From positions 290,355 through 354,354 of the forward strand of contig JAWQFM010000006.1 of NCBI GenBank assembly GCA_033442325.1: a DNA stretch of 64,000 nucleotides, in the 5' to 3' direction. A program made the position numbers and the translations under genes. The number at the start of each line of letters is the position of its first letter. Positions within the stretch are counted from its first letter, which is position 1. The notes beneath the pieces are model-generated. The model saw nothing but the letters and a program-made list of their open reading frames with translations. It searched no databases and was not told where the DNA came from. The DNA is from Salpingoeca rosetta. Its lineage: Eukaryota > Protista > Choanoflagellata. Below, piece after piece: positions 1,103 through 58,614 of the stretch.

Positions 1103-3326
1103 AGTTGTTTAAGTTGTTGTTGTTGTTGTTGTTGTTTAAGTTGTTGTTGTTGTTGTTGTTGTTTAAGTTGTTGTTGTTGTTGTCGTTAGTGGTGGTGTTT
1201 TGATGATGATGGTTTGGTGTGATACTTTGACAGTGTGCCACCAACACCCCTCCCCTTCCCTTTCGCGCCTTCCTCTTTCAAATCACTGCTCGCAAATGTA
1301 CCTCCAACACGCACTCTGTCCCATCTGCACACGTATGCTTATTAACATGCCCCCTTTCCCCTTCCCCAAACAGCAACACTACTCGCAGCCGCAGCCCGAG
1401 CTGCCATGCCCGCTCGTGGTGTACGACACGCCACTGTGGGCGGCATCAACGCGTTCCCTCTCGGACACGTTCGTCTCTGCGCGCCCGCGGCAGGAGGAGC
1501 GACTGACGCTCGAATCGCAACACGCAGCATCCATGCGCGCACGCACCCGCCCCGAGCTCTTCCGGGACGACGATGCGGTGAGCTGCAAATGCGTGGAGGA
1601 CGTGGAAGATGTGCACATGCATGTGTGTGTGTGTTGGGGCGTGAGTGTATCTTGCTTTTGTGTTTGCGTGAGTGTGTATTGGTTTCTTTTTTTCTTTTTT
1701 GTGTGTGCATATTGCCTGCTGTTCACCCTTCCATCATCCACTCACTCCTGCACTTCACTACCTCCACCATCGTGCACCTCATCAACCCTCCCCTGATGTG
1801 CCAGCGGTTCTTCGTGCAGCACGCCGACGACCGCTCTGCAGAGCTGACGGCGATGCGCTCCGACCGCACACTCAAGTGGCGGTCCTTCACAGACAACACG
1901 GTGCGCTGGTGATGGCAGCACATTGTCCACTTGGATGGGTAATGGAGTGGGGTGGAGGACACATTGTCTCGATTACCGCTTGTGATGGTTGCCACAACAC
2001 CCCCGCTCATATACATACACATGGCTCGTGAACTCCCACTCACTCACATACACACGCTTACCCACAAATTGAAACACCTCGCCCACCATTGGCCATTGCA
2101 GCTGCCACTGGTCGGAACGGTTCAGAGCTCGCGGGAGATGCGACGTCACCAACAGCAGCAACAACAGCAGCGGCACCAGAAGCACACGCACCGCCGCACG
2201 CGCCAGCACCACGCCAACGGCAGGTGAGCCCACCGGTTGCTGCAAGATGCGTGCGCGCGTGACGCTATTTCTGGTTTCATGTTGTGAACTGATGGCTGCA
2301 AACCCCTGTACTTGGTTGTCTACTCACGTCCTTGTTCATGCCCTTCACCTCTCTCCCGACCACGCTTCTCGCTTGCTGCTCCATTCATGATGACAGCCGC
2401 ACCTTCGACGACAACCTGTTTGGCAACGTAAGCACGTGCTTATCCTGCCCGCTCCCACCGCTGCACACATCGAGTCTCGAATTGAATTTGTACTCACACG
2501 TCATCACTCACGCTGGCACGTTTCTCCCTGGTTTGCTTCTCTATCTATGTGTGTTTCTCTCTCCCCCCCCCCCCGTTGTGAATGCGCTGCTGCTGTCTCT
2601 CGACTGCATTAGCGCGAGGATGCTGTGAAGCGAACCTGCCGCCAACTCGGCCTCTACACAGACCCGACAAGCCAATCGTGAGTTCCTCTTTTGTGTGTGT
2701 GGTTTTGTGTGTTTGTGTGTGTTTGCGTATGTATTTGTGTTTTTGAGTGTGCTATTGTGTGTGATGTGTACTTGGGTGTGCTATTGTGTGTGATGTGCAC
2801 TTGCGTGCGCGCGTGTGTGTCATGTTTTCGTGCGCAACTTTGACATCGCACTGACATGATGTTCTCTTGTGGTTGATGGCTTGAAGGTGGATGTGCATCA
2901 AGCAGCCATTGGCGGACGTGCGGGTAAGTTAAAATGTGAGGTGGTTGAGGACATGGGCTAGTGATTGTCGTTGAACTTTCATTGTCTGCACAATTGTGAC
3001 CAGACTCACATCTGCAACTCACCCACACCCACACACACACACACACATACACCGCTGTTCCCTTTCGTGCTTTTCTTCAACTGCAACAGCATCTACTGAG
3101 ACACCAGGGTGACTTTGTGGTGCACAAGTCAGCGCACGGCAATTACGCGTGCCTGACAATGCAGCACGAAGGGAACGCCGTGTCGTTTGAGATGGTGCGC
3201 CGCAACGGCGGGCTTGGGCTCCTCGACTCGCGCGAAACCTTTGATCGCCTCACCCGCCTGATCGAGCACTACGTCCACCCGGCGCAGACAGACCTGCCGG
3301 CCTCTCTCGGTCCAAACTCCATGTGA
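1..3326 (+). CDS. SH2-domain protein (5' end outside window; two SH2 domains visible). Approx. exons: 1-19, 371-484, 756-~879, 1374-1577, 1805-1900, 2102-2223, 2397-2427, 2613-2677, 2887-2923, 3090-3326
   Basis: Spliced peptide gives WLVLGLPRDEAVSLLEGKPTGTFIIRESQSS..LVLCLV..FPTLHGLV..HY (SH2). It also gives WMCIKQPLADVRHLLRHQGDFVVHKS..YACLTM..FDRLTRLIEHYV..DLPASL* (SH2). GT-AG boundaries I checked have consistent phases. Confidence 0.8.
924..1182. repeat. Intronic (TTG)n microsatellite periodically interrupted by TTTAAG
   Basis: Directly visible; source of the poly-L/C/N ORFs. Confidence 0.95.
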
Positions 3327-3813: not shown

Positions 3814-5102
3814 ATGGACCGCATCAACAAATGGAGAAAGGCCCACAAGGCTTCGAAGGAAGCAAAATCGCAAAAGGAGAAAAGGGTATGCATTCCACCT
3901 CTCTTCAATGCCGTCCTGAATGTCGCAGCCAACTTTGCCAAAGTCGCCGGCCAAACGGAGTGGTCCAAGCTGGTCAAGGGCCTGGGCTTCCTGCCGCAGT
4001 ACTTTTCTGCCTCGTAAGCAATCCGTGTTTTGGTTTATGTTTTGGTTCATGTGGTGTTCCTGTGTCCTCCAGCTCTCCTGCACTGCCCCTTGTCCGGTTG
4101 TGGGCACCTTGTTGACTTTGGTGTGCTCACATCACTGTGTCCACTCATCATGGCTTGAATCACAAGTCGGACACATGTCATTCAGCAACTTGTCTACTCA
4201 CTCACACACACACACACACACACACTCACTCACTCACTCTCTCACACAAACGCACACACTCTCACACACACACACACACACACACACAGGACAACCCTTC
4301 GCGAGGCTGCGCTGGAGCTGGCCGTCGCCGTGCTCAGCAACGAGGATGCTCGAGCAAACTTGACTGAGGCCGCCGACGCCAGCGCATCTTTTCCTCCAGC
4401 TCCTCAACACTGTCGTCGATCAGTTTGTGGGCGCAAGCACTGATCCGGACACGATGAGTGGCCGGTCATTTGACCTGTGCGCCCAAATCTGTGTGCTCCT
4501 GCTTGAGCACAGGAACATCCTCGACACTGCCCACCGCCAACCGGACCTCCTCCGCACCCTCGCTCGTGCTTCGGTGCGCCAACCCCAGATTCGTGAACAC
4601 GTGTACCGTCACAAGAACAAGGGCATCGTCCACACGCTGGATGCCGCGGACACCAACAGCAAGGTGAGACAGCCCTACAACACTGCCGCACACACGCACA
4701 CGCACACGCACATGCAGTGTCACACGGCACGCACTGTCACACATAGACACGCACGTACATACACGCACGCGTGCACGCACATGGTCAGTCTGTGTCTGGC
4801 CTGCATAGCCTCGTCCTCTTGCACATTTCGCCTCGTTCTGCTCATCGTCCCTTGCATTGTCCATCACCACGAACAGGGACCATCCTCCCTTGTGCCCAAC
4901 TTTCGATTCACCTGGACCGATGATCGCGTGGATGAGATCAGCCAGGCGACCTGGGAGCACCAGCGCAAGCTCTGGCGTGTCGCCGACCCCCACCACTACC
5001 GCAGATTCACAGGCACGTCTAACAAACAGTGTGTTGCGCTCCTGTGCGCGTGCATCGCATGTGCTCATCAAGCCATTGCTGTTGCATGGCCATGCAACCA
5101 AC

Positions 5103-5142
<40 letters not shown>

Positions 5143-8100
5143 ACGCATGCATACATGCATGCGCCTTCACACATGACGTGGCAACGACACTCACCCCTTT
5201 CTCCTCCCTCGCCCCTTGCATGTTTGGACTGCAACACAGGCCCCGACACCCTCGCCCGCGTCTTTTCCCTTCTCACTTCAACCGATGATGAGCTCAACGA
5301 CTTCATTCGCCACGTGCTGCGTGAGTCCCTCGCCGCAAACCTCACCGCCGACGAAAGCAAGGACCTCATGTACAAGCTGGGCACCATTGCGTTTTCGACC
5401 AACGTCAGCAACACCCACGTGTCCGCATTTTGCCAACTGCTGGACGTGTCAGCATGGGAACGCGCGTTCACCGTGCTCACTGGCGCTGCATCGGACCCCG
5501 AAGCACACGAAGCCTTCCTCCAGTCCTCGACCCTTGCAACCGTCTGTGCTGCCGTTCGTGGCACTCTGGAATCGGGCCTGGCTGAATGGCTGTGCCAGCC
5601 AGCTCAGGACAACATCGCCCGCACCCGTCTCCTCCAAGCCGTTCAACAGCACGTGGACACAACGCTACAGCTGTCAGCCTCCGTCGCGGGTTCCTCAACG
5701 ACACCGCCATCTGACACTCTTCAAGCATCCCACACGCCCCATATCAACTCCACCAGTGCACTGGACACTCCCCAGCCCGACTCGGCACTCGGCACGTTCG
5801 TCTCGCCCAAATCCTCCTCGCCTGACTCTTCTAAAAACCCAAGCAACGATCTCAGCAACGCTGCTGATGATGATGATGACGATGACGATTGGGGTGCTGG
5901 CCACGATGACCAAACCGATGGTGTCGGCAATGATGCCAATGGTGCCAATCACACCACTGCTGCCGATAATGATGATGATGATTGGGGCGATGACAGCACC
6001 ACTGACAGCACCACTGACAGCACCACTTTCAATGGCGGTCCTCAAACGGATGCTGACACTCGCGCAGCTCTCATCCAGCGCGTGACCGACCTCATCAAGG
6101 AACACTTGAGCACACTGTACCACCTCGTTCTCCGCCGCACAAACACCATCCTTCAATTTCACCTGCAATCCAGCAACACAGAGGCAGTCTCCACGGTCTG
6201 TGTTGAGGTGCTGGAGATTGTGCACAAGAGCAGCACCTTGGCCTTGCTGGACCTGCATGAGGTTACCGACCTGAAGGATCTCCTCTCCAATCTCCTGCGC
6301 ATCAACACCGCCCCGTCCGATGGCCTCCTCGTCGCCCTCGTCCGCCACATCCGCCCAAAGCCTGCCACGCTGCATCACCTTGCCACAGAGTCGAACAGGC
6401 GCCGCCTCCTCGGTCGACTCCAACTCGTTCAACGCATCCTGGTTGAGTGTGTGGAGCGTGATCCCTCTGAAATGTACAACGCAACGGAAGAGACCCTCGA
6501 CTTGCTTGCTGCAGCCGTGCCAGACCACACCGCCTGTCCGGCTGACTGTGCCGCTGCCTTCCTGGCCATCTTCGGCAGTTCCGGTGCTTTCCAGTTCACG
6601 CCAGCCCACGCCAGCCACATCATCGAGGTCCTGGCTGCCACGTCGCTCGATGGTGAACATGCCACTCCAAGCAACACTCCAGCCACTGCTGATACAACTG
6701 TCATGGCGCCCACCACAACAACAGCCCACGCCTCTGTCGCTGACCCAAAGACTGAGCAGCGCACGCGCCTGTGCATGCTGTTGCTCTCGCTCACCCGTTC
6801 TGCTGATAAAGAGGTGATCCAGCGTAATTGGCAGTTCATTGCTGACAGGCTCCTCGCCGGCCTGCCCCTCATCACAGCCACGCCGCAGCAGCACAAGGCG
6901 TGTTGGCACGTCCTCTTCCGTGCAGCGCCAGCCCTGACTGCGAGGACCAAGATTCTGGCCGCCTTGTTCGAATTCTGCATGCAGCAGTGGCTTCAGCACG
7001 ACGAGCTAGCGTGGGCAAAGGGAGACGCCCTTGTCGACACCCTGCAAGTGCTGTCTCAGAGCAACCGCACCCGCACCCGCAACCTCATCAAGGACCAGAT
7101 CGCCAAAGCCATGCACACGCTCACGCACATGCTATCGTTCGACCGTCGAACTTCGCCAGCGTACGCCCTCCTGTTTGAGCTCGTGAAGCCCCACGACCCA
7201 GCCTCCGTCATCGACGGCAACGATGATGATGGCGAGTTTGACAGCGGTGCTCCATCCCGCAGTGAGCAGCTGCACGTCAGCGCCACAGACGCAGACTCCA
7301 AGTTCCCTCTCCCCGCAGCATTCAAGGAAGGCCTACAGCATGCTGTGGCAGAGTACAACACGAGCGAGGCTCATTCTTTCGAGATCATCAGCGATGGCGA
7401 GCGCGCCACCTTCAGTGGACACATCCTTGGCAACTGCTTCAACTCTGCGAGCGCGTATGCACAGGCTTGCAAGACGTTTCCGCCAGCAGACTGGGGCGTG
7501 GTCCCCACAACCCGCACCCTGCAGTACCTCAAGACCATCTTGTCCACACTTCGCACTAACGACAACCTGCTCCTGCAAGGCGAGACTGGTGTGGGCAAGA
7601 CGATGCTGACGCTCTTCGCCGGCCATCTCGCCAACCAGGTCGTGCTGCGCTTCAACGGGTCATCACACAGCAGCGTTGAGGACCTCTTTGGCAGCGCCAC
7701 CAACGACCCCACCAAGCCCGGCCACTTTGGGCTTGCCCCTGGCCCCGCCATCCTTGCCTATGCCTTTGGCTATTGGCTGTACATTGATGAGGCAAACCTG
7801 CTCAAGGAGGATCTGGTGCAGACCCTGGCCTGCCTGACTGAAGACCGTCTCTCTCTCGCCCCCTTTGCCAAAGGCCTCTCGATTCTCGACTGCACCTCTG
7901 CTTACACGGGCAAGCCCCTGCCCGTCATTGGCAGCGGCAGTGGCGGTGATGATGCTGTCCTCGTGCGAAAACACAAGAACTTCCGTCTCATCTTCGCCCA
8001 GAACCCTTGCGACAGCAGATACAACCGCGAAAAGCACAGCCTCAACGTCCTCAGTACCTTCGTGCCGCTGGATGTGACGTGGGGCTCGAACCTTGCATCC

Positions 8101-11100
8101 CGCAAGGCCGAGTGGACGATGATCGCTGCCAGTGCCCTTCGTGGTGTTCTGCCTGATGACATCCACCACAGTCTGTCTTCCGACAAGTTGGCGAGCCAGC
8201 TGGTGGACTTTCACGTGCGAATCACAGATGCACAGCTCCTCGAAGAGCTTCGTGCCATCGAGAACGAGGGCGAGGTGTACGAGCAGCAGCACTTCATGGA
8301 CTTGACGGTGCGCGAGCTCAAGCGTTTTGCCAGCGCTTGTCGCGCATACATGGGCCGCCTCAAGGGATCCGCTTCGAAGGCTTTCCAAACACACTTGACA
8401 GCGTTTGCGCTCATGCTCTCCTCCATCTACGGTGCCCGCTTCCAGTGCGCTGCGTCCCGCCAGCGCATTGCCGCGATTGCGTTTGAATGTCTCAACGCAG
8501 ATCAGGCGCAAGCAACAGGAGCCTCTCCTCAAGGCCGGTTGCAGATGCATGCGCAGGCTGTCTTCATTGATGGCATCCCACTCCAGCGCAAGGTGGCCGC
8601 ACCCGAGCATGATATCGTGGACATTGTTCACGACAAGATCATGCAGTGCGCGACACACCCCGACTTCATGCTCCAGTATGGCTGCTACGACTTTGTCAAC
8701 CACGCATGTGTGGATCGCGTCCGAGCCATGATGCGTGATGAAGGCCGGTCGCTGGGTCATGCCCTCCTGCATGCGTATGTGGCGCCCGTTCGCTGTGTCC
8801 GTGCTCGGGCGGACCTTCTCGCTGACATTTGCAAGACGCTGGATGCCACGCATGCAGCGGAGGCACAGCGCCTGCGTGACGTCGACCCGTCCTCTCTGCC
8901 AGAGCCCGACCAGTACATCTGCCCAATTGTGGTGACAGCAGAGCTGGTGACAGCAGCACGGGAGTGCGCAGTGGCGTTCCTCCTGCGCACACCCTTGATG
9001 ATCTGCGGCCCGAGCGGCGCTGGCAAACAGGTTCTCGTGCGGTTCCTGTCTGCCATGACCAACATCAGCCTCACCCACCTCCACCTGACAAAGGAGACGG
9101 AGGTGCAAGACTTCATTGGCATGGCCATCCCAGAGACAGACCACGCGACAGGGGACATGAACCTGCGGTGGCACGATGGCCACTTGCCTCGCACCATGCG
9201 CAATGGCGGCATTCTGGTTCTTGATGACATTCTCTCCCTGCAGTCGTCTCTGCTCGAACGGCTCAACCCGGTCTTGGAGGAGAAGCCCACGCTCGTGCTG
9301 TCCGAGAACAACCAAGTCTCACCGATACCTGAGGACGAGATCAGCGACTTTATGCGCTTTGTCGCCATTGTCGAAGCAAGGAACAAGGCCATGACGCCCG
9401 CCTTTGGCAACCGCTTTCACATGGTGTACCTCAACCCGCCACACAAATCATCGACATGGTTTGTGGCTGCCAGCCGTCTCTTGCTCGGGCATGAAATGGG
9501 TGATGGGGAATGTCCACGTGATGTCCGTGACCTGACAGCAAAGGCACATCAAGTCTGGTGCAGTTCAGAGGAGCGACCCAGTGTGCGGCGCTTCGTGATG
9601 CTGTTTGATGCCGCGTTTCACCTCACCCGCGGTACTACACCTCCCCCACTCAAGAACAAGGCTGCAGCCGCTGTCCGAGAGGCGTGTGAGCTCGTGCTCG
9701 CCCAACACCCGAAAACGGCAGAAGTCCTCAAGCAGCAGCTCGTCAATTCCCTTCCACCCAACAGCATTGACTATGTGGATGCGTTGCTAACGTCACCTCA
9801 GCCTGATGGTGGGGTAACCTTTGTCCTGGACAAGGACACAACACCACGGGTGTATGCAAACGCGAACAAGGTGCTGCGCGCCCTCAAGGCACGCGTTCCC
9901 GTCGTGTTTGAGGGCAGTCAGGCCGTGGGCAAGACGGCAACCGTGACTGCTCTCGTCCACTGGTTGACGCACAAGGCGATACTGCACAAGACCAACAGTG
10001 ATTCCACGCAAGCCACGGACTACCTCTCCTACTGGCGCCCCAGCAAGCAAGGCAACTTTGCCTTTGAAGAGGCAGAGTTCGTGCGCACCCTGCGCAGCGG
10101 CACATGCTTCCTGAACGACGAGTTCAACCTCGCCAACACGTCCACCCTCCTCTCTGTCTTCATCCCTGTGCTTGACAGCGGCTGCTTGGCGCTTCCAACA
10201 GGCGAGTACGTGCACAGAGCACCTGGCTTCTGGCTTGCAGCTTGCCAGAACCCCGTTGGCTTTGCTGGGCGCAAGCCTTTGGCTCGCAAGCTGGCTGACC
10301 GCGTGTGTGTCGTGCCGTTCGAGAACCTGACACAGGACGAGCTGACGGAGATTGCTGCCAAGCGCACAAGAAACGCCATGAGCACAGACATGCTGCGCAA
10401 GTTTGCTCAGCTGCAGGTGCAGATGCGTGAGCACACCGCACTCAAGCAAGACCCGGCAGTCACCGTGCGTGAGGTGTGTCGCTGGACACGCCGCATGCAG
10501 GCCACGCCAGATTCAGCGCCTCACGCCGTTGCGAACGGCATTGAGTTGCTGGTGGGGCGATCACAAGGCCAACCGCAGCTTGTCGATTTGGTCACGAAAG
10601 CGTTTGCCAACGAAGAAGACGGCCAGAACGTTGACAGATTGCACAGCGTAATGGCGGGTGGGGATTCCATCCCCGATGTTTGCTCTTTTACACTCCCTCG
10701 TGATGGCTGCGTGGAAATCAGATATGAGGGCCATCCAGCGTCAACAGTTCGGGTCGAGACACAGCTGCCACCAGCTGCCATTGCACCATTGCTGACAGCA
10801 CCCTGCTTCAAGTCCAAGCAGTTTTGCCTTGATTTCTACCGCTTCTGCAAGTGCTACACAAACAAGGAGCCTGTGCTGTTGATTGGCCCCACGAGCCGTA
10901 AGACTCTGCTCGTAGAGATGCTGGCCAAGGTGACGGGTCGCCCGCTCTCAACATACACGCTTGGAACGGATTCGACGGCAGAAGAGCTCATTGGCCGCGT
11001 CCTGCCAACAACACTCGACGCACAGATGGCAAGTGCCGTCGATGTCATCAGGCGCATCGACACCATCCTTGCTGCTCAAGGCACTGCTGATGCATCCTTG

Positions 11101-14100
11101 ACCGGCCAGGCGTCTTTGCTGGAAACGGCTGCTGGGTTCATCGGAAGAGCCGACCTCAACTACACGGACGTGGGCCAATGGCTCGAGCGAGTTGGCGCCG
11201 TATTCCCTGCTGCTTCATCGTTCGTGGAAGAGGGAAGGACACTCCTCAACGATTTGCAGGTGACTCCGAACAAGCAAGGTGATTCCAGCACGCGCACCGA
11301 GCACAACGGAGATGATAGTAGCAGTGATGGCGAAGATGATGATTGGGGTGACGATTCAAATGAGCGGTCATCGTTGCCCACCTCCGCAGCGGGTGATGGC
11401 ACGGAACGTGTTGGCGATGGCAATGCCGACGATGACGAGGATGATTGGGGTGACGACAGCGAAGATGCAGATATGGATGATGATGATGACGATGATGACG
11501 ATAACTGGGGCGATGATGGTGGCGCTGATGATGATGCGGGTGCCACACGAGGCAATGTAAGCAGCCACGACGACAGCTGGGGTGGTGACACCAGCGAGCA
11601 CAGCTCCCGTCGCTCGTCCTCATCACTCAGCATCATGGATGAAAAGCCCCAGGATGGCTCGGACGCCTGGTGGCTCCGGGAGGACATTATGGCACCAGGC
11701 GACGACACTGCCGATGATGAACCGCAGACAAACGCCGTGGACGTGCGAATCTCCGAGCTGAAGCTCAAGGTTGTGGTGTACAAAGTTGCCTTGCAAGCGC
11801 TGCAGTTCATCACAGCGTCTGTGTTGGCCGTTTCCGAGAGCCGTGACGAGCACACACAAATGCAACAAGAGCTGGCGGCCTGTATCGCTCTTCTTCGTCA
11901 CAGTGTGGATGCCCTCCTCAAGGAAGATGTTCAGCACTCGTCTGAATTCCAGCGCCCGCGCTTCCAATTCAAGGACGGCCCAGTCACGGACGCTGTGCGG
12001 CGTGGTGGCATGCTGCATCTGCGTGACTTGCACCGCGCCCCTGCATCTGCTGTGGAGAAGTTCAACTCTCTCTTGGAGTTGGAGCCTTCGCTCGAGACAA
12101 GCGAGTATGGCAACATCGACTGCCCGCAGTCGTTCTTCTTTGTCGCTTCCGTCACATCCGACCGCCGGCTCTTTGAGTGCGGCTTGTCACCGGCTCTCAT
12201 CTCGCGCGTCACAGTCATTGACGTGCAGCCGTACACCAACACTGAGTTTCAGCACCTGGTCAGAGGCGCCCTCGGTAGCGTGGCAGATACGACGAACGAG
12301 CTTGCCCACTTCATCAACGACGTGTTTGAAGCATATGGCTCCTTCAACACGCGCCTTGCGTACCAGATGATTGGCTTTGTGCAGCGACACAAGGACCGCT
12401 TCGTCCGCGTGCAAGACGGCGTTCTTCACGCTGTGGCGGCGCTCATAGCGCCTCGGCTGGATGACGCGGGAATTGACAAGCTCAACAAGGTCGTGACAGA
12501 TCGATTCCAGTTCAGACTGGAGGAGTTTGAAAAGCAACCCGTTGGCTTCTATTCACTGCCTCCCGCGCGACAAACAACGCATGCATCCTCGACACCAACG
12601 CAGCAGCCACAGAAGCTGGAAATCATCCCTGGCGAGCACATCCTGGAACAGGCACATTTCTTCTCAGCTGACGGTGATGGTGTGGTGTTCGGTCTTGGTC
12701 CTTTCTGCATCAGAAGTGTGCACACGTCCGCAGATGTGGCGCCAAATCTGCAGCTGTATCCCGGCATGAGCACCAACCACAATCTTCGCGCGATGGCTCG
12801 CGTTTTCAGCGCAGGACTATATCCTGTTCTCCTGGGCCCACCGGCAAGTGGCAAGCTGTCCTGTGCTCGAGAACTGGCGCGTGCGCTTGGCTACAGCAAC
12901 GTGACGCTGATCACGTTTGCGCGTTCCACATCGAGCGAGGATGTGATTGGCCGTTACCACCAAGCGCTGGACGGGTCGTTCCGGTGGGAAGATGGCGCGT
13001 TCATGACCGCTGTGAAGGCAAACCGATTCATCGTGCTCAAAGATATCCACCTCATCAACAACGAGCTTGCTGTCCAGATTGCTCGCATCTTGCGCGAGCA
13101 TTCAACACCCCCAACAACTGCAATGAGAACAAGCACAGCTTGTCAGGTGCCAAAGTCGCCGCTTGTGTGCGCGACTGCTCCAGCGTTGGAGAAGGTTGCA
13201 GATCAACTGCAAATTGCGTTTGCCCCGCTTTCCTTCCAACACATCCTGCCGAGCAGCCCACACCCTGACTTGGTGTATCCACTGGTCTGCCACGCATTCC
13301 GCGACATTGAACAGCTGAGTGTGAGCCACGAACTGTTCATGCCATTGGCCCGTCTATTGTGTGAACTGGTGGAATTGAGCGAGGACGACTCCACAGATCT
13401 GGTTGGCGCATTTCCGTCCTGGTCCCTGCGTGAAATGGAGAAAGTGAAGACCTTGTTCGTACCGCTCTTCGAGACACTGCAGTGCCTGCAGTGGGTGAAA
13501 CACGACGAGCAAGGCGCAGATGACGATGAAGATGGCGGCGTGCATCTAGACCATAGTCGGACAGAAAGCGATGGGCACCACGACAGCAGCCTGCATGCAG
13601 ACATGCAGCAGCTGGCGCTGCAAGTCCTGACCCAAGTGGCACAGCTGGTGTTTGTGGGCGGCCTTGAAGGTCGAGCTCGTGACCTGGCCTTGAAGAAGGT
13701 GGCCAAGTGTTTTCCTCAAACAGCGCCTGACACTCAGTCGGCAGTTGTGGTGGACACAACCCTAACGCACTGCGTGCGTGTGGGGTCGGTGTTCTTTCCG
13801 CGTCGCCAAACCACGCGAGAGACGCCCGCGAACGATGCACGGCAAACTGTCTCACCGGATGTCGTGCTCACACCACAGCATGCCAAAACGTTGCAGGACA
13901 TGGCGCTGGTGCTGCAGGCCCACCGCAGCCTCACCATGCGTGGTCCCACGGCCAGCGGCAAGACCCAGCTCATTCGCTGGTTCGCCCGTGCAGCCAATGC
14001 ACCCACCCTCGAACTCCATCTGAAGAAAGCAACGGAGATCGGAGATGTCATGGGCCAACTGCGCGCAGAAATGGGAATTGTGCGCGTGCAGAGACTGGCC

Positions 14101-17100
14101 AACGCTGTCTCCAGCGCCCTGTGCAGCATCTTCGTTGATCTCAACACGCACGTCCTCAGTGCGCAGGAGAACGCACCTCAGCACACAGCTCAGGGCACAG
14201 CTGCGCTTGCAACTTCACTTACCCACGATATCGCCAAGCTGGCTTCGTGCATGGACAAACTCGTGTGTGCTCTGCAAGCGGGAGACGTGGCCAAGGCGAT
14301 GCCCTTGAAGGATGACATCAATCAGCAACTCGCAGACCTCCAAGCCAGACTCGAGGCCTCTGCCGCACAGATTGGGCTGGATGTACAAGCATTTTCATCT
14401 GCTGCGCATGAGTTCACAGAGTCCATTGACCACTTGCTTGTGCGCCTGGATGACATGTGTTTTGACGCGGGGGATGGGCCTCTCCTGCAAGCTGCCCGCA
14501 ACGGCTGGTGGCTTGTCCTGAACGATGTCAACTTCTGCCCACACGACTTCTTGCTGCAGCTGCAAGGGTTTCTGGAGAACGACGTCGCTGACATGGGTGC
14601 ACACACTCCAAAAGACACCACCAACGGCACAAGCGCGTGGCAGGTGTCGCCAGACTTCCGCATTATCCTCACGTATGACCCAGACCGACCAGGCGTGGTT
14701 CCGCTGCCACCCTCTGTGCGCCAGCGCTCTGTTGAAGTTGCACTGCCAGCAGTCGATGCGGTGGAGCAGAGAGACACGTTGCATCACATCATGAGCCAGT
14801 GGATCTCAGAGATTGGATGCGACTATCCACAACGAGTGGCAAACGTGTTTGTGACCGCCCACTTTGCAGCAAAGCAGGCAATGTTACCTTCCGAGGCGGA
14901 CGGTCCGTTTGCAGTGACATTCCGAACAGCCATCCGCGCAATGAAGCTGTTCCGCACCCTCATCCCTCACGTGACGCACGCCAACCTGCAGCAGGCAGTG
15001 CTCTTTGTGCTGCGTCAAGTCTACGATCAGCATGGTGGTGGCGTCATCAAGCAGCCCTTGCTGGCCGAGCTCCAGCATTGGCCTGGCGAAGAGCCGAGGT
15101 CACTCAACACATGCATCGTATCATCTGGCGATACTGCCATCTCAACAATTGACGACACACTTGGTGCGCTCATATGGCACATGGCGGGTGTGGCGATGAA
15201 GGATGACAGCACAACCGACAGCACACAGGATATTTGTCACTGGGCGGTGGCCAGAGCCATGCAGTCCCTGGGCTGCGGCGGGGAGGAGCTGTCCCATGCT
15301 CACTTTCCTGACAAGCCGCAGCTCTTCTTCAACGCCTTCGCTGATCCCGAGCACTCCATTGCGCTTCTTGCTCTGGAAGCTCAAAGCGTAGAGATTGTGT
15401 CACGACAACAAGTGTTGGCGACTGTGCGCACTCTTCAACGCGCACTGGCAGATATTCCGCAAGTGGCAACCCTGCAGGACTGCGACAAATGGCGCAACAA
15501 GCTGCAACAGTGGTTGGAGGCATGTCAACACCTTGTGATCGCAGGTCGCACATTATCCAGGCGCCCTGGCATGCAAGACCTTGTCTCGTCCTTTGAAGGA
15601 GTGGTGGCTGCCCTGAGCAACTACGTGACTGCTTTTTCTGGACTGTTCAGGGAAGAGGTTGGTGCTCAGGTTCTGCTGTCTCGATTCAGAGCACTCATCG
15701 AAGCCGCGGAGCGACGCATGGCAACGGCGTTGCCTGACTCCAAAGGAAGGCTTGGATTCTTCATTGCACAAATGGAGGCAGTTGTTCGCGCCAAACTCGT
15801 GCCACTCTCCCTGCAAGACCAGTCCGTATTTCGCATTCTCGCCCAATCTCCATCGCTCCGAGGGCTCATGCTACGATTCAGCATGTTCCTTCCAAAAGCC
15901 ACCATCCATTTGTCAGCAGCAGCCCTCTGCCTGCGCAGGGACATACCTTTCTCCGCTGACGAGTACACGGCCACAGCAACCACGCTTGCCAGAATGGTCA
16001 GTGCCGCGGCCACCTCAAGTGATGCTGGCGGCAAGGAAGCCAACCCTCTCTTGTCCCAGGATTTCATCACAAAGGCCAACTTGATGCAAGACAAGTTTGA
16101 GGATGTGAAGGATATCCTTGGGCCTCGCTTCAACAAAGCTCGTCGAGAGTACAGGAAGGCCGTCGCGGAGAAGCTTGATGACGACACTCCCGACTCTGTT
16201 CGTACATTCCTGTCAAACTTTGAAGAGCCTGCATTGGCTCCACCGGAGGAGTGTGGGGAAGAGTTTGCAGAGCTTGTGGAGAAGCGACACCAAGTGGCGG
16301 GATTGCACGAGGAGATGACTGCGCTCAAGGAAGAGCTGGATGACCTCAAGCAATGCGTGTTTGAGATGTTGGAAGAGCACGGTCCCGCGCTTCAGCCATC
16401 GCAGCACCAGTTTGACGTAATGGAGGCCAAGCGTGTCCTTGAAGGTGGTGCTGATGCCGGCTTTGAGGAGAGCGATAAGATCCAAGACGCCTGGCATGTG
16501 TTCCGGAACTTTGCAGCGTCATCCCCGAACACATTCCTGGTTGTTGTGAACGCTGCGGCTGAAGACTGGCGCACACAAGTGGATGTGCAGCTGCTTTGCG
16601 AGCGTGGACATGACACTGCGGTCGTTGTTGTTGTTCCTGCATTCCTATTGAGAGAGCGCCACGTATCTGCGAACGAGAGCGAAGAAGTCATGGACGGCGG
16701 AGCACTGAAACTCAGGGTCACGCTCGTTGAGGAAGCTGAGACCGGCGCAGGGTCCAAAATGCTGGAGCAGGTCATCACTCAGCTCATGACACCTCACCGA
16801 GATGCAGACTTTTCCCTCGAGCGCAAAGTGGAGCGGTTTCAGGGACGAAGAAAAGCGCTGACAGGGCACAGCACGGCAAGCCATGTCATGACCAGAGCCA
16901 TTGTTACACACTGCTCCTCCCAGCGCAAGGTTGTGGCGGCCTCAAACTCGATCGTGAGGACGCTCGCCGCCTTGAAACGGCACGACATGGAGTCTGACGC
17001 GTGGGTGAGCAAAGTTGGCTTGCTCATCACCCACATCAAGGGCTTGCACAAGGCTGTTGACGCCAACAAGGATACTGAGCATCAAATGTCTGACGCAGTT

Positions 17101-20100
17101 GTCGAGTTTTGGGCATCGCAGTCTATTGATGAGCGTACGAAGATTGGCTTGCACCATGCCCTCGTCACGCTGGCCAACGACGATGTTCCTGGGTCTGCCC
17201 GCATGCTGCAAGCTCTTGACCAAGACACATTGGACAAGTACCGCTGCATGTTTGCGGTGGTGCGCGTGTGCACGCTTTATGCATCACACGGGGATGCCGG
17301 CATGTCCTCCGTTCAACCTGCAATCTCCTCCATGCTTTCAGCGTGGTTGGATGACGTTCCGCCACAATCCACAATGGCCGATGCGCTCTCAACCATCCTC
17401 TCCAGCTGTCCTCTAACCGCACGTGTCTTCAAGGACAATATCTCGGCTTTGTTGCAGCTGCTTGGTCAGAAACTTGTGGGCGGCAAGGAAGCACGTCAGC
17501 AGCTGGCGGCTGTTCTTGACCAACTGCGTGAACTGCAGGAGCAGCAACCAACGCCACCAGAGCTCGAGGCGGATATCAACCGGCTTTCCTCGTTGCTGAG
17601 CTCAGATGATGTTTGCGGAGTGGACATGACGTTTTGGCAGCGAAAGCCCGAGGAATGGCGAAAGCGTTTGCGTGAGGAGAAGCAGCGCCATGCAAGACGA
17701 GAACTCCGTTCAATGTTCAAACTGCCAGCTCTCGAAGGCACCCTCACGCATGAGCTGGTGGACGCCTTGAAGGGGCTGGCTGCAGATGTGAAGAAGTTCA
17801 ACCGATCGGCTGTGCAATGCTCAGATCTCCGGGCAAAGCTGAAACGTGTTCTGGCCGGCCAGGTTGTGGACAACATTGCTGATCTTGTCCACCAAATCGC
17901 GGGTCTGTGTGGCGAAGCCACACAACTTATGTCAAGACTGCAAGACAAGCAACACCTCGTGCTCCAACAACACAAGGTGCCAGCTGATGTGTTGCCACAC
18001 GTGCTCAAAGCGATGCAGCGTGTCGCCAGTGCCACGTGTATGACTCCAGATACGACTGAGTCCGCAGATTGGTTCAACCTCACACCAGATGAGCTGGTAC
18101 TTGGAGTGGTTCCAGCTGGGTGGCGCGTCGTGTTGTCCCGCGGCTTGAGTGCTGAAGAGATTGAGCAGCAAGCAGAGCAATTTTCGCATTGCACAACGAA
18201 TACCTTCGGACCCATGCATGAACGCTTTGCGGGAATGGAGCTCACCCTGAACAATTGTGCCGAACAGGTGCGTAGTTCACTTTGTGATCTGGTCAGAAGC
18301 ATCAAGGAAACGATCCAGCAGTCAGATCTGCAAGGTCACTCTCAAACAGGGATGAGAAAGCGAGAAGCGCAAGATCAAGTCGTGGACAAGCTGCAACAAG
18401 TCGAAGACGGGCTTGCAGCAGAGACCTCAGACGACATTGACAGCCACACCGAGGCCCAAGAGTGCTTGAATTTGGTCCTCCCTGGCACCAAGGCATCACA
18501 GCAACTCCAGCACATTTGCGGTGCACTCGATGTGATGCGCTGCTTTGACCAGTCCCAACACCAGGCCACGGAGGATTCAGCAAGTCCCTCCACAGACCTG
18601 ATCCGGCGCGAAGGGGAAAGTGTTGTTGACTGCGTCCAGCGTGTCCTTCAGCGAACCAACATTTCTGACCCGCACAATGTTGCCGTGCAGAGGGTGTGGT
18701 GCTGGTACTTGTCGACTCTGTTGATTGTGGGGGCGCGCAACAGCAGCGAGGTCAAGTGGGGCACGACAGATGTTTCGGAACAAGCGCGGGATGTTGCTGT
18801 GCGGTGCTGTCAGAGCCTGATGGACTTTGGCAGCGCCGTTTCCGTCACCAAACGCACCATCGAGTCATTTGAGCATGCGCTGTCCCAATGTGACCTGTCC
18901 ACCGGCACCTTCAAGTTCAGTGTGAAGGTGCTGCACTCGCTCAGCGTGCTTCACATTTTGACGCTTCCACGGCCGCTCATCGACGTTGCGTTTGCATTGT
19001 CGCGAACCTCCGCGGTAGAAGCCAACGTGGATGTGCCTGTTGCGGTGGGTCAGTTTGTGGAGGGCACGCTTCCTGAGTATGCTCGAGCGCTGCTTCAGAG
19101 CGCCTTGTCTGGCCAGCCACCATCAGTGATCGACGCGCTGGATGAGGTACTGCCACCTCCGAGTGAGGTGGAAACATTGGACGCTCTCATGCCTTGGGAA
19201 GGTGTGCTGTCGAACATCTCCGCCACGCCCGCTCCAGCAGGAGCTATTCCAGCCACGACTTTGGGCACCGAAGGGCCGTCCACCTTGACAACATTCACCG
19301 CAGCATTTGGGAACACCAACGAGGACAAAGATGATGACGAGGATGATGACATTGTTGGTGACAACACGACAGCATCGCAGGCAGCAAGTTTGTACGGCTT
19401 CAACCCTGATGATGCCGTTGATCGCATGAGCATCAGTCTCAAAAAGCTCATCTTTGACGAGGGTGCAACACCTGGCGACAGCGATGGTGATCACAGGTCC
19501 AGCGGTGACGGGAGCGGTGGATCAAGGCCTGGTGCCCATGTGGCCACACCAGCGCACGCTGATGGTGTTCGCATTTCTTCTTCGATGCTGGCAAACGCCA
19601 TCATCAAGACCAGCGCATCCACCTCATCTACCTCATCATCATCAGACAGAAAGCGGATGGTCACTTGCAAGGTCAAACTGACGAAAGAGGACATCATGGC
19701 TGCGACAAAGCAGTTCCAGCATCGGCGTGGAAGCGGGGAAGTGCGATTCCGACCTGCCGCGCTCTCTGCCGATCGTGAGATTGGACATGTGACCACGGTC
19801 AAAGACATTGACTTCAAGGATGGGTTCTCGTTTCAGGAGTCCCTGTTTGGCCGGCTGTGTCGTGCGCACCACATGAACATCCTGTCCCTTCAGCAAAAGG
19901 TGCTGGATCTGCTCATGCAAACACACGTTCGCGGTGTGGAGGTGCATCTTGAGGTGGCCATTCTGGTCGACAATTCGCTCTCCATGCAAGGCGGGTGCGG
20001 CAACCAAGCTCGCCAAACACTGGTGGTGCTGTTGGAGGCACTGCGGCGCCTGGAATTGAAGACTGCGGTCCTTTCGTTTGCTGGGAAGGGCCAGGAGCGG

Positions 20101-21801
20101 TGGCTGAAGAAGTTTGAGCACGCCATGTCCTGTGAGAAGGGTGAAGAAGTGCTGCTGCGCCTCAACTTCAACCAGTTTGGCACTGCAATTGCGGATGCAA
20201 TGCACTGTGCGCGCGCGCATCTGGCTGAGCGTCGACGCACGCGCTCCGCCAGTGGGAAAGCCGTGTATCCGCAGACAATGGTGGTGATCACAGACGGTCT
20301 GTCAAGCCAACTGAAGGCGGAGGGGCAGGCCCATTCTGCGTTCTCGCAGGTGCTGTCGAAAGCTACCTCAGAAGGCGTGAAGGTTGTTGGCATTGAGATG
20401 AGCAGCTCAACGGCGATGGGTGGAAGCGACTTGCGCAGCTTGGCCAAGCATGGGCTGGCATGGACCCAGCCAAACCTGAAGAGCATGAGCGTGGAGGTGC
20501 CCAGCGTGTTGTGCCGGGTGCTGGAGGAGCAGCTGAGGCAGCACAAGGGTGTTGTGTCACGCCAGCCTCCATTCGATGGCAACCGCGTGCGTCTGGGTGT
20601 CAACGGACGCATCTCAGCCTTTGAGCTTGATTTGCAGGAGCTGGCCAGCGATCGGTGGATTGACACGTACAAGCCAGGGCCGTACCGCCCGCCAAATGTG
20701 TGCGTGCAGGCCCTTGGTGCTCCACCGCAGAAGTGCAAGGCGCCGATGCTGCGTTCGGATGTTCTGCGGAAGATGCGTGTGACCCACACGATGTATCGAC
20801 GCGCCGCAACCCCGTGTGAACACTCAGCTCAGTGGTACACGGACACGTTGCAGAAGTACGGCCAGCAAGTGAACATGGTGCAAGATGTGCTGAAGCAGCA
20901 CCTGACGAAGCGTGCATCCATGCGCAAGAAGGCTGGCTTCACCAGCGGCAAGAGCGTCAACCCAGCCAAGCTGATGCAATGCAAGGCGACCCAATTCACC
21001 TCCACTGCGTATTGGGAACGCTACGTGCCTGAGGGCCGGCCAGCCTACCGCTTTGCACTGGCAATTGACATGAGCGCATCCACCGGTGACACGCCAACGT
21101 CCTTCTTCAATGCACAGTCCCTGGTGCTGCTGCTGGAGGCCTTCAAGCGATTTGGGCTGCATGACACAATTGTGTACGGGTTTGGCGAGAGCGCGTGCAC
21201 GCTGATGAAGGATCGCACAGAGCACGTGGACGCGACAGCGCTGAGCACCATCGTGCGCACGCTGGCAACTGTTGGGTTTGCGCAGCAGTCGACGAACGTG
21301 GCTGCCGCCATCGCCGCTGGCGTGGAGCTGTTGACGGAGGCGAATGACAACGACGCGAGTGTTGAGACGTCGACGCTGTTTGTGTTGACGGACGATACGC
21401 CAGATCCACAGCATGAGGCCGCGCTGCGGTACGCCGCTGCCCTCGGCATTGACGCGGTGCAGATTGTGATTGGCACGGTGCCCACGTCCACGCAGCGCGC
21501 GTTCACCCGCTTCATCGAAGTGTCGTCGCCGCTTGAGCTGCCAAAAGCACTTGACATGTACTTTAAGCGCGTGCATCTTCCGCAAGCACGAAGCCAAATG
21601 GTCCCCGTGCGCAGGGGTGATTTCGTGCTGAGTGATGATGGGCAGAAGGATGTGCAGGAAAAGGTCGCTGCTGAGTTGGCCAAAGACAGCCCGTATCGAG
21701 GGTATCTTGTTGAGGAAGAGGACGAGTTTGTCGTAGAGGCGCAAGTCGAAGGGACTGGGAATAGACAGCACTTGCTACTTGACATGAGCGAACTCTGTTG
21801 A
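3814..21801 (+). CDS. Giant midasin(Rea1/MDN1)-like protein: N-terminal helical region, 6 AAA+ modules, long linker, two vWA/MIDAS domains. Exons ~3814-4013 (or to 3885), ~4290/4400-4663, 4877-5012, 5240-21801
   Basis: Stop-free 5590-aa frame. P-loops: LQGETGVGKT (~7573), ICGPSGAGKQ (~9001), FEGSQAVGKT (~9907), LIGPTSRKT (~10879), LLGPPASGKL (~12829), MRGPTASGKT (~13936), each followed by a Walker-B-like strand. vWA motifs: ILVDNSLSM..GT..VITDG (~19960-20300) and LAIDMSAS..TN..VLTDD (~21058-21396). The 5' exon structure is uncertain. Confidence 0.85.
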
Positions 21802-22383
21802 AGTGATGCTTGTGTATTTGTGTGTTGTGTGTGTGGGGGGGGGTGCGTTATTGGGCTTGAAGTGTTCAAAGATGAGAGGACGTGTTTCTGTTTCTTCTGT
21901 TCAGGAGGGGGGCGGACTGTTGACGAGGAGAGAGTGCTTGAGTACTTTGAGTAGCAGATGAGGTATTCATCAAATTGCGTTGTTGCGTTGTTGCGTTGTA
22001 TTCGTTGATTTGAGTGTTTGCGGATTAAAAGAAACACATCATTGCTAAGTACATTCTAATGAAGCCACGCCAGCCACGTGAGCGTGTTCCTCGGAGAAAG
22101 TGGGCAAGGGATGGGAGACGCAAGAGACAGGGCTGTCACTGCGACACAAGTCTTTTACTTGAAGACCCCCGAGTCGTGCTTATGAAACAAGGGAACAGCC
22201 AGACAACCACAACGACAACTGCAACGGACCGGAAGCTGCTTCCACCTCATCCGAAGGGAAAACAAAAAGAACACCGCAAAACGTGTCTGACTGGAATAAA
22301 TCGTTCTGCGATTTACCGCGCGCTGCTGCTGCCTTCCTCACCACTGCCTCGCCAACTGCCTCATCGACCACTCCACTCCAACG

Positions 22384-22765
22384 ATGGCGTCCATCCACAC
22401 CGCTCCCGATCAAATCTCCGCTGAAGACTCAGTCGACACCCTCGGTGCGCACTTGCCATCCTTGCGTCTGTTGCCTCACAACGAACAGCCTTCATGTAGT
22501 GCGTGTGTCGATGTACGTACCTCTATGATTTCGTGTGTCTGTGTCTATGTGCGTTCATCTTCCGCTGCATGTGCATGTGTGGTGTGTATCCCAGGGACTG
22601 GGCCACAAGTCACAGCCACGACGCAACAACGCCAGGCACATGTCGCCACTCCGGGTTCTGATGCGATTGACACCGGTTCTGTTCCGGCACCAAAACGCAA
22701 ACCAAGCCGGCGCTCAGGTGAAACAGGATATCATGCACGTGTACACGAGCGTGCTCGTGCGCGTG

Positions 22766-22845
<80 letters not shown>

Positions 22846-22909
22846 TGTGTGTGTGTGTGCGTGTGTGTGTGTGTGTGCGTGTGTGAGAGAGAGAGAGAGA
22901 CACACACGC

Positions 22910-22972
<63 letters not shown>

Positions 22973-24108
22973 GCCAGACAGACACAGAGACACACCCACA
23001 CACGCGCAGACACACACAGACACATCNNNNNNNNNNNNNNNNNNNNNNNNNNNNNNNNNNNNNNNNNNNNNNNNNNNNNNNNNNNNNNNNNNNNNNNNNN
23101 NNNNNNNNNNNNNNNNNNNNNNNNNNNNNNNNNNNNNNNNNNNNNNNNNNNNNNNNNNNNNNNNNNNNNNNNNNNNNNNNNNNNNNNNNNNNNNNNNNNN
23201 NNNNNNNNNNNNNNNNNNNNNNNNNNNNNNNNNNNNNNNNNNNNNNNNNNNNNNNNNNNNNNNNNNNNNNNNNNNNNNNNNNNNNNNNNNNNNNNNNNNN
23301 NNNNNNNNNNNNNNNNNNNNNNNNNNNNNNNNNNNNNNNNNNNNNNNNNNNNNNNNNNNNNNNNNNNNNNNNNNNNNNNNNNNNNNNNNNNNNNNNNNNN
23401 NNNNNNNNNNNNNNNNNNNNNNNNNNNNNNNNNNNNNNNNNNNNNNNNNNNNNNNNNNNNNNNNNNNNNNNNNNNNNNNNNNNNNNNNNNNNNNNNNNNN
23501 NNNNNNNNNNNNNNNNNNNNNNNNNNNNNNNNNNNNNNNNNNNNNNNNNNNNNNNNNNNNNNNNNNNNNNNNNNNNNNNNNNNNNNNNNNNNNNNNNNNN
23601 NNNNNNNNNNNNNNNNNNNNNNNNNNNNNNNNNNNNNNNNNNNNNNNNNNNNNNNNNNNNNNNNNNNNNNNNNNNNNNNNNNNNNNNNNNNNNNNNNNNN
23701 NNNNNNNNNNNNNNNNNNNNNNNNNNNNNNNNNNNNNNNNNNNNNNNNNNNNNNNNNNNNNNNNNNNNNNNNNNNNNNNNNNNNNNNNNNNNNNNNNNNN
23801 NNNNNNNNNNNNNNNNNNNNNNNNNNNNNNNNNNNNNNNNNNNNNNNNNNNNNNNNNNNNNNNNNNNNNNNNNNNNNNNNNNNNNNNNNNNNNNNNNNNN
23901 NNNNNNNNNNNNNNNNNNNNNNNNNNNNNNNNNNNNNNNNNNNNNNNNNNNNNNNNNNNNNNNNNNNNNNNNNNNNNNNNNNNNNNNNNNNNNNNNNNNN
24001 NNNNNNNNNNNNNNCCAACCAACAATCTCATCGGCGACCGTACATTCTGCAAACATACAGATGATGCGCGGCAGCCGCAGTCGGAGTCAAATGACGCGGA
24101 GCACGCAG
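22384..24108 (+). CDS. Possible small multi-exon hypothetical gene interrupted by the assembly gap (exons ~22384-22444, 22595-22717, 24061-24108)
   Basis: ATG-initiated MASIHTAPDQISAEDSVDTL with phase-compatible GT-AG sites. No recognisable domain and no clear stop codon. Confidence 0.3.
22768..23026. repeat. Compound microsatellite (GA)n-(GT)n-(CAGA)n flanking the assembly gap
   Basis: Directly visible. Confidence 0.9.
23027..24014. other. Assembly gap (N run)
   Basis: Run of N. Confidence 1.

Positions 24109-55783: not shown

Positions 55784-58614
<2,831 letters not shown>

Follow-up and report, generated by a model that had tools for sequence, protein, structure and literature searches.

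Rings of six AAA modules carried on a single chain are known from dynein, midasin and RNF213, all three of major importance in the cell. In midasin (MDN1, Rea1), a domain of the von Willebrand factor A type (vWA) with a metal-ion-dependent adhesion site (MIDAS) holds an acidic residue of a ubiquitin-like (UBL) domain via a metal ion, and the ring pulls. RNF213 has no vWA domains, while VWA8, of about 1,900 residues, combines two to three AAA_5 modules with one C-terminal vWA. Ring and vWA are paired in NorQ/NorD as well, in which the vWA forms a plug in the pore of the ring (bioRxiv 10.1101/2022.11.16.516607). Here we analyse a giant gene in a 64,000-nucleotide (nt) stretch of the choanoflagellate Salpingoeca rosetta (contig JAWQFM010000006.1, positions 290,355 to 354,354). 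We call this whole stretch the window, and positions given without a contig are counted from its first letter. The gene occupies a single plus-strand frame at 5029-21801, open across 5,590 codons, whose product would carry six AAA modules, a helical region and two vWA domains. An earlier note, made from the sequence, had taken it for a divergent midasin paralogue in which an extra vWA stood in place of the tether. That the gene is not MDN1 was correct; what the note missed is that it is a derived, shortened copy from a separate and widespread family whose proteins normally reach about 8,000 residues and carry Ig-like domains, three vWAs and either a U-box or a RING. In the reading we favour, with a probability of roughly two in three, the window holds a functional, expressed, short and ligase-less paralogue of this family of giant single-chain AAA+ proteins.

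The relatives of the gene within its own genome reveal its origin. A search of the assembly (55.4 Mb, 68 contigs) with the second vWA domain, vWA2, returned exactly three copies of the family, plus a MIDAS domain on contig C1 at 21% identity. The sister copy, an 8,012-codon frame on the same contig 1 Mb from the window gene (G000:C6:1289197-1313232), is 93% identical to it in protein and 94.8% in DNA. The third copy is an 8,145-codon frame on contig C12 (G000:C12:1153959-1178393), with 60% protein identity to the window copy. The DNA alignment to the sister covers window positions 3832-19309, skips 6,798 nt and resumes over 19307-21714. The junction of this first deletion, at 19307..19309 on the plus strand, shows a 3-nt microhomology (TTG), and the 2,266 codons missing there correspond in the sisters to Ig-like (CFAP65-type) domains and a U-box (expectation values, E, 8e-13 and 2e-8). 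By Pfam, Ig-like domains and U-box or RING are absent from the window protein. The sisters also carry a third vWA after vWA2 (VWA_4 type, DxTxS…DAPQHG), which the window copy lacks: about 212 codons are gone in the plus-strand region 21760..21801, ahead of a retained family C-terminus, …MSEL-x-stop. Because the last ~8 codons, the stop and the following TG tract match the family C-terminus, this second deletion is internal and not a truncation. Both deletions are in frame.

At 93% identity, the window gene certainly belongs by descent to the giant ring/Ig/U-box/triple-vWA family, despite its missing parts. The ancestral form, as judged by comparison of the copies, is still present twice in the genome: it starts with an N-terminal region, continues with six midasin-like AAA_5 modules, a long helical stretch, Ig-like domains and a U-box, and closes with three vWAs. 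Read from the same alignments, the window copy is a duplicate that lost the Ig/U-box segment and the third vWA by two recent and precise in-frame deletions, and it is only through these events that it has two vWA domains and a short post-ring part.

The three copies do not diverge evenly. Synonymous differences between the window and C12 copies are about 0.7 over most of the gene and fall to 0.01-0.26 at residues 872-971, 1173-1876 and 5249-5548. These tracts (about 7642-7941, 8545-10656 and 20773-21672) cover ring modules 1-3 and vWA2; within them all three copies show 93-99% DNA identity, and in one tract the window copy resembles the C12 copy more than its own sister. The first vWA domain, vWA1, has diverged to 23-65% protein identity across the copies, as have the N-terminal and helical regions. 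Patchwise gene conversion among three paralogues on two contigs is demonstrable, and homogenises ring modules 1-3 and the MIDAS-type vWA2.

The window gene is real, transcribed and under purifying selection. Against the sister, the ratio of nonsynonymous to synonymous substitution rates (dN/dS) is 0.29 over 5,524 codons, with a synonymous divergence (dS) of about 0.11. Amino-acid changes polarised by the third copy number 76 on the window copy and 68 on the sister, and outside the conversion tracts 31 and 35, respectively (binned counts summed by hand). In a neutral simulation with about 430 substitutions, 12.5 stop codons were expected and none of 2,000 runs stayed open. Across 8 studies, 19 sequencing runs each contain half or more of the words sampled from the stretch. 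The first deletion junction is crossed without mismatch in two runs from different studies, by contigs of X1 and of X11, the latter contig being 2,653 nt long and free of mismatches, and four runs hold contigs that span the 3' end (21603-22035 and beyond). A spliced joint, 22445 to 22596, which removes a GT-AG intron of the next gene, is present in X11 and X19, and for this reason these two runs are taken as RNA assemblies.

Several points weigh against a functional, ligase-less machine. The deletions took away the sole recognisable catalytic output, the U-box, as might befall a gene being lost, and gene conversion from intact sisters could give a dispensable copy stretches that look healthy. 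That the runs are RNA is judged from one spliced contig, and assembled contigs show neither transcript ends nor transcript level. The 5' end is provisional, with a first exon whose phase is mismatched to that of the exon at 4877-5012, and the AlphaFold2 models are of middling confidence (predicted local distance difference test, pLDDT, 63-65). The analysis shows gene structure, descent, deletions, selection, transcription, domain identities and a separate MDN1; the choice of active ATP sites, a metal-dependent grip and the relationship to the sister proteins are inferred. Some of these points would suit a young and dispensable duplicate that is turning into a pseudogene, its frame open only through recency and through patching by intact sisters. 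The duplication is recent by its dS, conversion among the copies is demonstrable, and the losses of the U-box, Ig-like domains and third vWA have left a post-ring part of 2,350 residues, against about 4,800-5,500 in the other relatives examined, none of which is so short. Decay of this kind is nevertheless unlikely: it fits poorly with a dN/dS of 0.29 and with derived changes equal in the window copy and its sister, also outside the conversion tracts; no stop or frameshift interrupts 5,590 codons where neutrality predicts about 12 stops; both deletions kept the frame, the second preserving the C-terminal motif of the family; and the gene is transcribed. Two 95%-identical copies on one contig also invite misassembly, and the short form might be a collapse or misjoin of an 8,000-residue gene. 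We consider such an artefact extremely improbable, given the mismatch-free bridging of the first junction in different studies, the four runs that bridge the 3' end, the breadth of runs holding the words of the stretch and the three distinct copies in the genome search.

It would be just as surprising if the window gene were the organism's own divergent MDN1, acting in 60S ribosome maturation. The best solved-structure match of the ring is midasin (E 3e-53, PDB chains), as is that of vWA2, and, as in MDN1, inserts interrupt modules 4 and 6. However, a separate canonical MDN1, which the earlier note had suggested looking for, is found at G000:C1, about 1043594-1065139. In tblastn it is colinear with a fungal midasin (P0002) through the MIDAS domain, with AAA1 and AAA3-AAA6 at 33-59% identity, AAA2 represented by short exon pieces, further matches in the linker, and the MIDAS domain at 36% identity (E 2e-39); to the window this query aligns only weakly. 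The midasin AAA-lid family rises above threshold only on contig C1 in the genome search. Pfam gives no match on the post-ring part of the C1 gene, whose identity rests on tblastn colinearity. A run of N at G000:C1:1065228-1066214 starts less than 100 nt past the end of the MIDAS match in this gene.

A maximum-likelihood tree of 74 single AAA modules, with support from the Shimodaira-Hasegawa-like approximate likelihood ratio test (SH-aLRT), places the window gene apart in the same way. Each MDN1 module forms a clade (SH-aLRT 95-100) uniting fungi, oomycete, green alga and nematode, and these clades also take in the C1 pieces of modules 1 and 3-5, those long enough for the tree. The window modules and their relatives form clades of their own outside all six, module 3 alone being sister to its MDN1 counterpart (SH-aLRT 93). 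A different Walker B pattern, the lack of an AAA2 insert and of a long acidic tether, and the absence of detectable linker similarity also tell against MDN1. Other AAA_5 matches in the genome are a dynein heavy chain on C22 and further ones on C14 and C3, where the reading frames scanned, on the opposite strand to the matches, gave no hit. The earlier note had named findings that would speak against its proposal: a sole midasin that also falls on the MDN1 branch, a DNSLS region that is not a vWA, or an already characterised family. What emerged was a separate, canonical midasin with window modules outside the MDN1 clades, a vWA fold for the DNSLS region and no published account of the architecture, the last two described below; none of the three findings thus turned up.

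The six AAA modules proposed from the sequence were recovered both by Pfam, as six AAA_5 stretches (E 2e-48 and 3e-21 for the two halves) with a weak midasin AAA-lid match, and by an iterated module profile, which places them at residues 837-945, 1313-1468, 1614-1763, 1940-2399, 2589-2727 and 2958-3239, behind an N-terminal region of ~770 residues. All lie on the plus strand. Module 1 (7537..7863) is canonical, with Walker A GETGVGKT and Walker B YIDEA. Module 2 (8965..9432; GPSGAGKQ and VLDDI) is degenerate and contiguous, without the insert that splits MDN1 AAA2. Module 3 (9868..10317; GSQAVGKT and LNDEF) is again canonical and is the one that is sister to MDN1 AAA3 in the module tree. Module 4 (10846..12225) has a degenerate P-loop (GPT-SRKT), lacks the Walker B glutamate and is split by an aspartate/glutamate-rich insert of ~280 residues holding DDDWGDD motifs. 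Module 5 (12793..13209; GPPASGKL and VLKD) is degenerate. Module 6 (13900..14745), also split by an insert, keeps GPTASGKT and has a Walker B (VLNDV) without glutamate, as in MDN1 AAA6. Canonical Walker A and B together are thus confined to modules 1 and 3.

Aspartate- and glutamate-rich stretches in the window protein are limited to residues 271-330 and the AAA4 insert. Both the N-terminal region and this insert also hold acidic tryptophan motifs of the DDDWGDD type, six in all, at frame residues 280-330 and 2100-2190 (about 5866-6018 and 11326-11598). Five such motifs are present in the 93%-identical sister and none in the third paralogue, in Barroeca, in Monosiga or in MDN1.

The order given in the earlier note, a linker of ~1600 residues followed by two vWA domains, also stands: the ring-to-vWA1 stretch measures ~1,500-1,700 residues and the motif coordinates are exact. 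On the plus strand, vWA1 (19951..20466) carries DNSLS at 19969-19983, the threonine of its GT in FGTAIAD at 20176-20196, and VITDG at 20284-20298. It matches Pfam VWA at E 6e-10, and residues 4976-5127, which correspond to this DNSLS domain, are the only place where Pfam VWA or VWA_2 match. Next comes the pre-MIDAS element (20875..21045, plus strand), …KAGFTSGKSVNPAKLMQCKATQF…YWERY…, with KAGFTSGKS at 20929-20955, which aligns with the same element of the Rea1/Mdn1 MIDAS. The MIDAS-type vWA2 (21046..21573, plus strand) has DMSAS at 21067-21081, the threonine of its TN in QSTNVA at 21286-21303, and VLTDD at 21382-21396, and is missed by Pfam alone. By phmmer, its best PDB-chain match is the midasin MIDAS (6qt8, E 7.5e-5), in an alignment spanning the pre-MIDAS element. 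A family profile built from seven sequences aligns the same element, so that the parallel with midasin drawn from the sequence holds: for vWA2 it reaches E 9e-18 to residues 4418-4644 of S. pombe Mdn1 and 2e-17 to 6qt8, and for vWA1 3e-13 to the human MDN1 MIDAS chain 8ql1_A.

An AlphaFold2 model of residues 4880-5590 shows two alpha/beta domains (mean pLDDT 63.5, domain cores about 75-85). Foldseek ranks MDN1/Rea1 MIDAS structures at the top of its matches to this model (template modelling score by target 0.71-0.73, E about 1e-10), followed by tandem-vWA proteins, which carry two such domains, and NorD. The midasin MIDAS-UBL complexes 6qta, 6qtb and 8ql1 are among the matches. The model and its Foldseek matches agree with the earlier assignment of both the DNSLS and the DMSAS region to the vWA fold.

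Between ring and vWA1, the post-ring region (14746..19308, plus strand) is predicted by AlphaFold2 to be all-helical (15 sequences, pLDDT 65). Its first ~120 residues correspond to the AAA6 lid, which matches the lids of dynein and Rea1/Mdn1 with Z scores of 9.6-12.7 in VIA-align. Beyond this lid, Foldseek and VIA-align of the post-ring model returned no match to the Rea1 linker, and hhalign gave similarity to the midasin linker a probability of 0.05%, in shallow alignments that distant homology may escape.

At its 5' end the gene is split. The main exon runs to the stop codon as 5240..21801 on the plus strand: conservation and the acceptor site begin at 5240, though the frame is open from 5029. 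Upstream lies a conserved coding exon, 4877..5012 (plus strand; GPSSLVPNFRFTW...RRFTG), with 57% identity to the third paralogue over 47 residues (E 2e-13) and a conserved CAG acceptor. The junction from 5012 to 5240 is supported in all three copies. The intron, 5013-5239, has a GC donor (CAG/GCACGT) in the window and sister copies and GT at this place in the third paralogue. A provisional first coding exon, 3814..4013 on the plus strand, opens with an ATG at 3814 (MDRINKWRKAHK...) and gives a translated match to the third paralogue at E 8e-5. The window and sister copies have its ATG and GTAAG donor in common; DNA similarity to the full-length sister starts at 3832, and the segment conserved with the third paralogue spans ~3832-4005. 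A GT/GC-AG model, 3814-4008 / 4877-5012 / 5240-21801, would give one open frame and was not adopted, the conserved strong donor at 4013/4014 being in another phase. Within 17500-21801, no splice joints were seen in four runs.

Downstream, RNA contigs run unbroken from the end of the coding region (21802) through a 580-nt spacer into exon 1 of the next gene (ATG at 22385), which suggests overlapping untranslated regions or read-through. Runs of N occupy 23027-24014 and 57588-57854; the apparent low G+C content (27%) at 22001-24000 is an artefact of the former.

Outside this genome, a profile of the vWA region was searched against 1.84 billion representative sequences and gave 213 proteins at a cut-off of E <= 1e-30. 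Many are giant and match the whole vWA1-vWA2-vWA3 series at their C-terminus. They include Monosiga brevicollis XP_001742639.1 (7,261 residues), Bryopsis sp. GMH42204.1 and proteins of Chlorarachnion reptans, Mesostigma viride, Rhodomonas salina and the rotifer Adineta steineri; their annotations read only 'hypothetical' or 'VWFA domain-containing' protein. The earlier note had proposed looking in other protists for six AAA modules with two vWAs; relatives do occur in many protists, the normal form having three vWAs. A word-based protein search with the part of the sister copy from U-box to third vWA scored no hit, in a database that does hold a relative. Closest are the choanoflagellates Barroeca monosierra, Salpingoeca kvevrii (a fragment) and M. 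brevicollis. A kinetoplastid origin of the DNA, to which the giant frame without introns and the CA repeats had pointed, was rejected in view of these choanoflagellate relatives. The full architecture is seen in B. monosierra EP01147_P007263 (7,806 residues: six AAA_5, Ig, U-box, VWA_2 and VWA_4), and a RING occupies the U-box position in the proteins of S. kvevrii and Monosiga. By Pfam, a U-box or RING is found only in the choanoflagellate members.

The wider collection holds some further variants. Three distant members, P0005, P0044 (Bryopsis) and P0071 (Chlorarachnion), carry a fourth vWA at the C-terminus, and Pfam detects neither U-box nor RING in them; P0005 keeps canonical Walker motifs in module 5 too. 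Another protein, P0006 (7,557 residues), combines N-terminal HEAT/ARM repeats, six AAA_5 modules at residues 4071-6484 and a MIDAS-like vWA. It was rejected as a family member: its modules cluster among themselves as odd and even sets, so that its ring arose by independent triplication of a two-module unit.

No description of the architecture of six-AAA ring, Ig, U-box and triple vWA, or of that of the window copy, was found in the literature. The nearest account is of a Monosiga gene with U-box and VWA, Mb_UBOXa, whose relatives were noted in Naegleria, Trimastix and Spironucleus but not in animals; an AAA ring is not mentioned for it (Marin 2010, PMC3087547). Mb_UBOXa may be the C-terminal part of a gene of the window's family; its accession differs from that of the Monosiga protein found here, and the two are likened by description. 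The earlier suggestion of a role in defence gains no support from homology, PADLOC anti-phage profiles giving no match to the ring or the vWA region.

If the window copy is a working, ligase-free member of its family, and on the model of midasin and of the MoxR/vWA pairs of bacteria, ATP turnover at modules 1 and 3, the sole ones with intact Walker A and B, would drive the ring and its helical extension. The second vWA, and probably the first, would use a bound metal ion to grip a client at an acidic residue, and the machine might then pull on the client or remodel it. The full-length sisters could also ubiquitinate the gripped client through their U-box, which the window copy could not do. 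The window copy may thus be either a ligase-free remodeller or a protein that competes with its sisters, or modulates them, over the same clients. The latter option is raised because gene conversion keeps the ring core and vWA2 nearly identical to those of the sisters. A bolder proposal, which we put forward as a doubtful one, is that the family represents a third ancient lineage of single-chain six-AAA mechanoenzymes beside dynein and midasin, coupling a MIDAS grip to ubiquitin ligation, and that the window copy evolved as its ligase-less antagonist or decoy. Were this true, conversion that matches engine and grip to those of the sisters would fit a regulator built into a system of quality control or of conflict (immune-like).

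As the ligase-free paralogue that we favour, the window copy would amount to a natural separation-of-function allele: the same engine and MIDAS-type grip, with no ubiquitin ligase. Comparing it with its sisters in a genetically tractable choanoflagellate could separate the role of ring and grip from the contribution of the ligase. The restriction of gene conversion to modules 1-3 and vWA2 may mark the parts that must stay the same, as against those free to diverge. The family also adds a further, unstudied ring lineage, which occurs in choanoflagellates, the nearest kin of animals, as well as in green algae, rhizarians, cryptophytes and a rotifer.

Among known systems, the window protein is most like its own full-length paralogues and choanoflagellate relatives. 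With these it has in common the layout of the ring (contiguous AAA2, split AAA4 and AAA6, canonical Walker motifs only in modules 1 and 3), as well as a helical region, vWA1, vWA2 with its pre-MIDAS element, and the …SEL motif at the C-terminus. It differs from them in missing the Ig-like (CFAP65/MSP-type) domains, the U-box or RING and the third vWA. Midasin resembles it in being a single chain of six AAA_5 modules with inserts in AAA4 and AAA6 and with a MIDAS-type vWA preceded by the same upstream element. However, the aligned MDN1 modules carry the Walker B aspartate-glutamate pair in modules 2-5, whereas the canonical sites of the window protein are in modules 1 and 3; the window protein has no AAA2 insert, no long acidic tether and no detectable linker similarity, and it adds the ~770-residue N-terminal region and a second vWA (the family norm being three). 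As for dynein, the features of its heavy chain (DHC_N2 linker, AAA_6 to AAA_9, stalk) are not found in the window protein, which has only a P-loop-level AAA_7 match; the true dynein of the same genome shows the full set of dynein domains.

The remaining systems are more distant. VWA8 is set apart, by description, by its number of modules and its size. RNF213 (mysterin) offers an analogy for the full-length sisters only, since it too combines a six-AAA ring and a ligase domain, there of RING type, in one giant chain. The window copy differs from it in lacking any ligase domain (no RING by Pfam), and the PDB search gave no match of an RNF213 chain to the window protein at E <= 0.001. The bacterial MoxR/vWA pairs NorQ-NorD and CbbQ-CbbO share the principle of a ring ATPase with a metal-site vWA adaptor: the AAA modules of the window protein match NorQ and CbbQ in the PDB search (E 5e-6 to 3e-5), and the vWA model matches NorD structurally. 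Their rings are homohexamers of a single module working with a separate vWA protein, in contrast to the six diverged modules and vWAs united here in one chain. What is known, then, is the MoxR/midasin-type ring with MIDAS vWA domains; what is new is a ligase-less, recently derived member of a widespread and unstudied family built on it.

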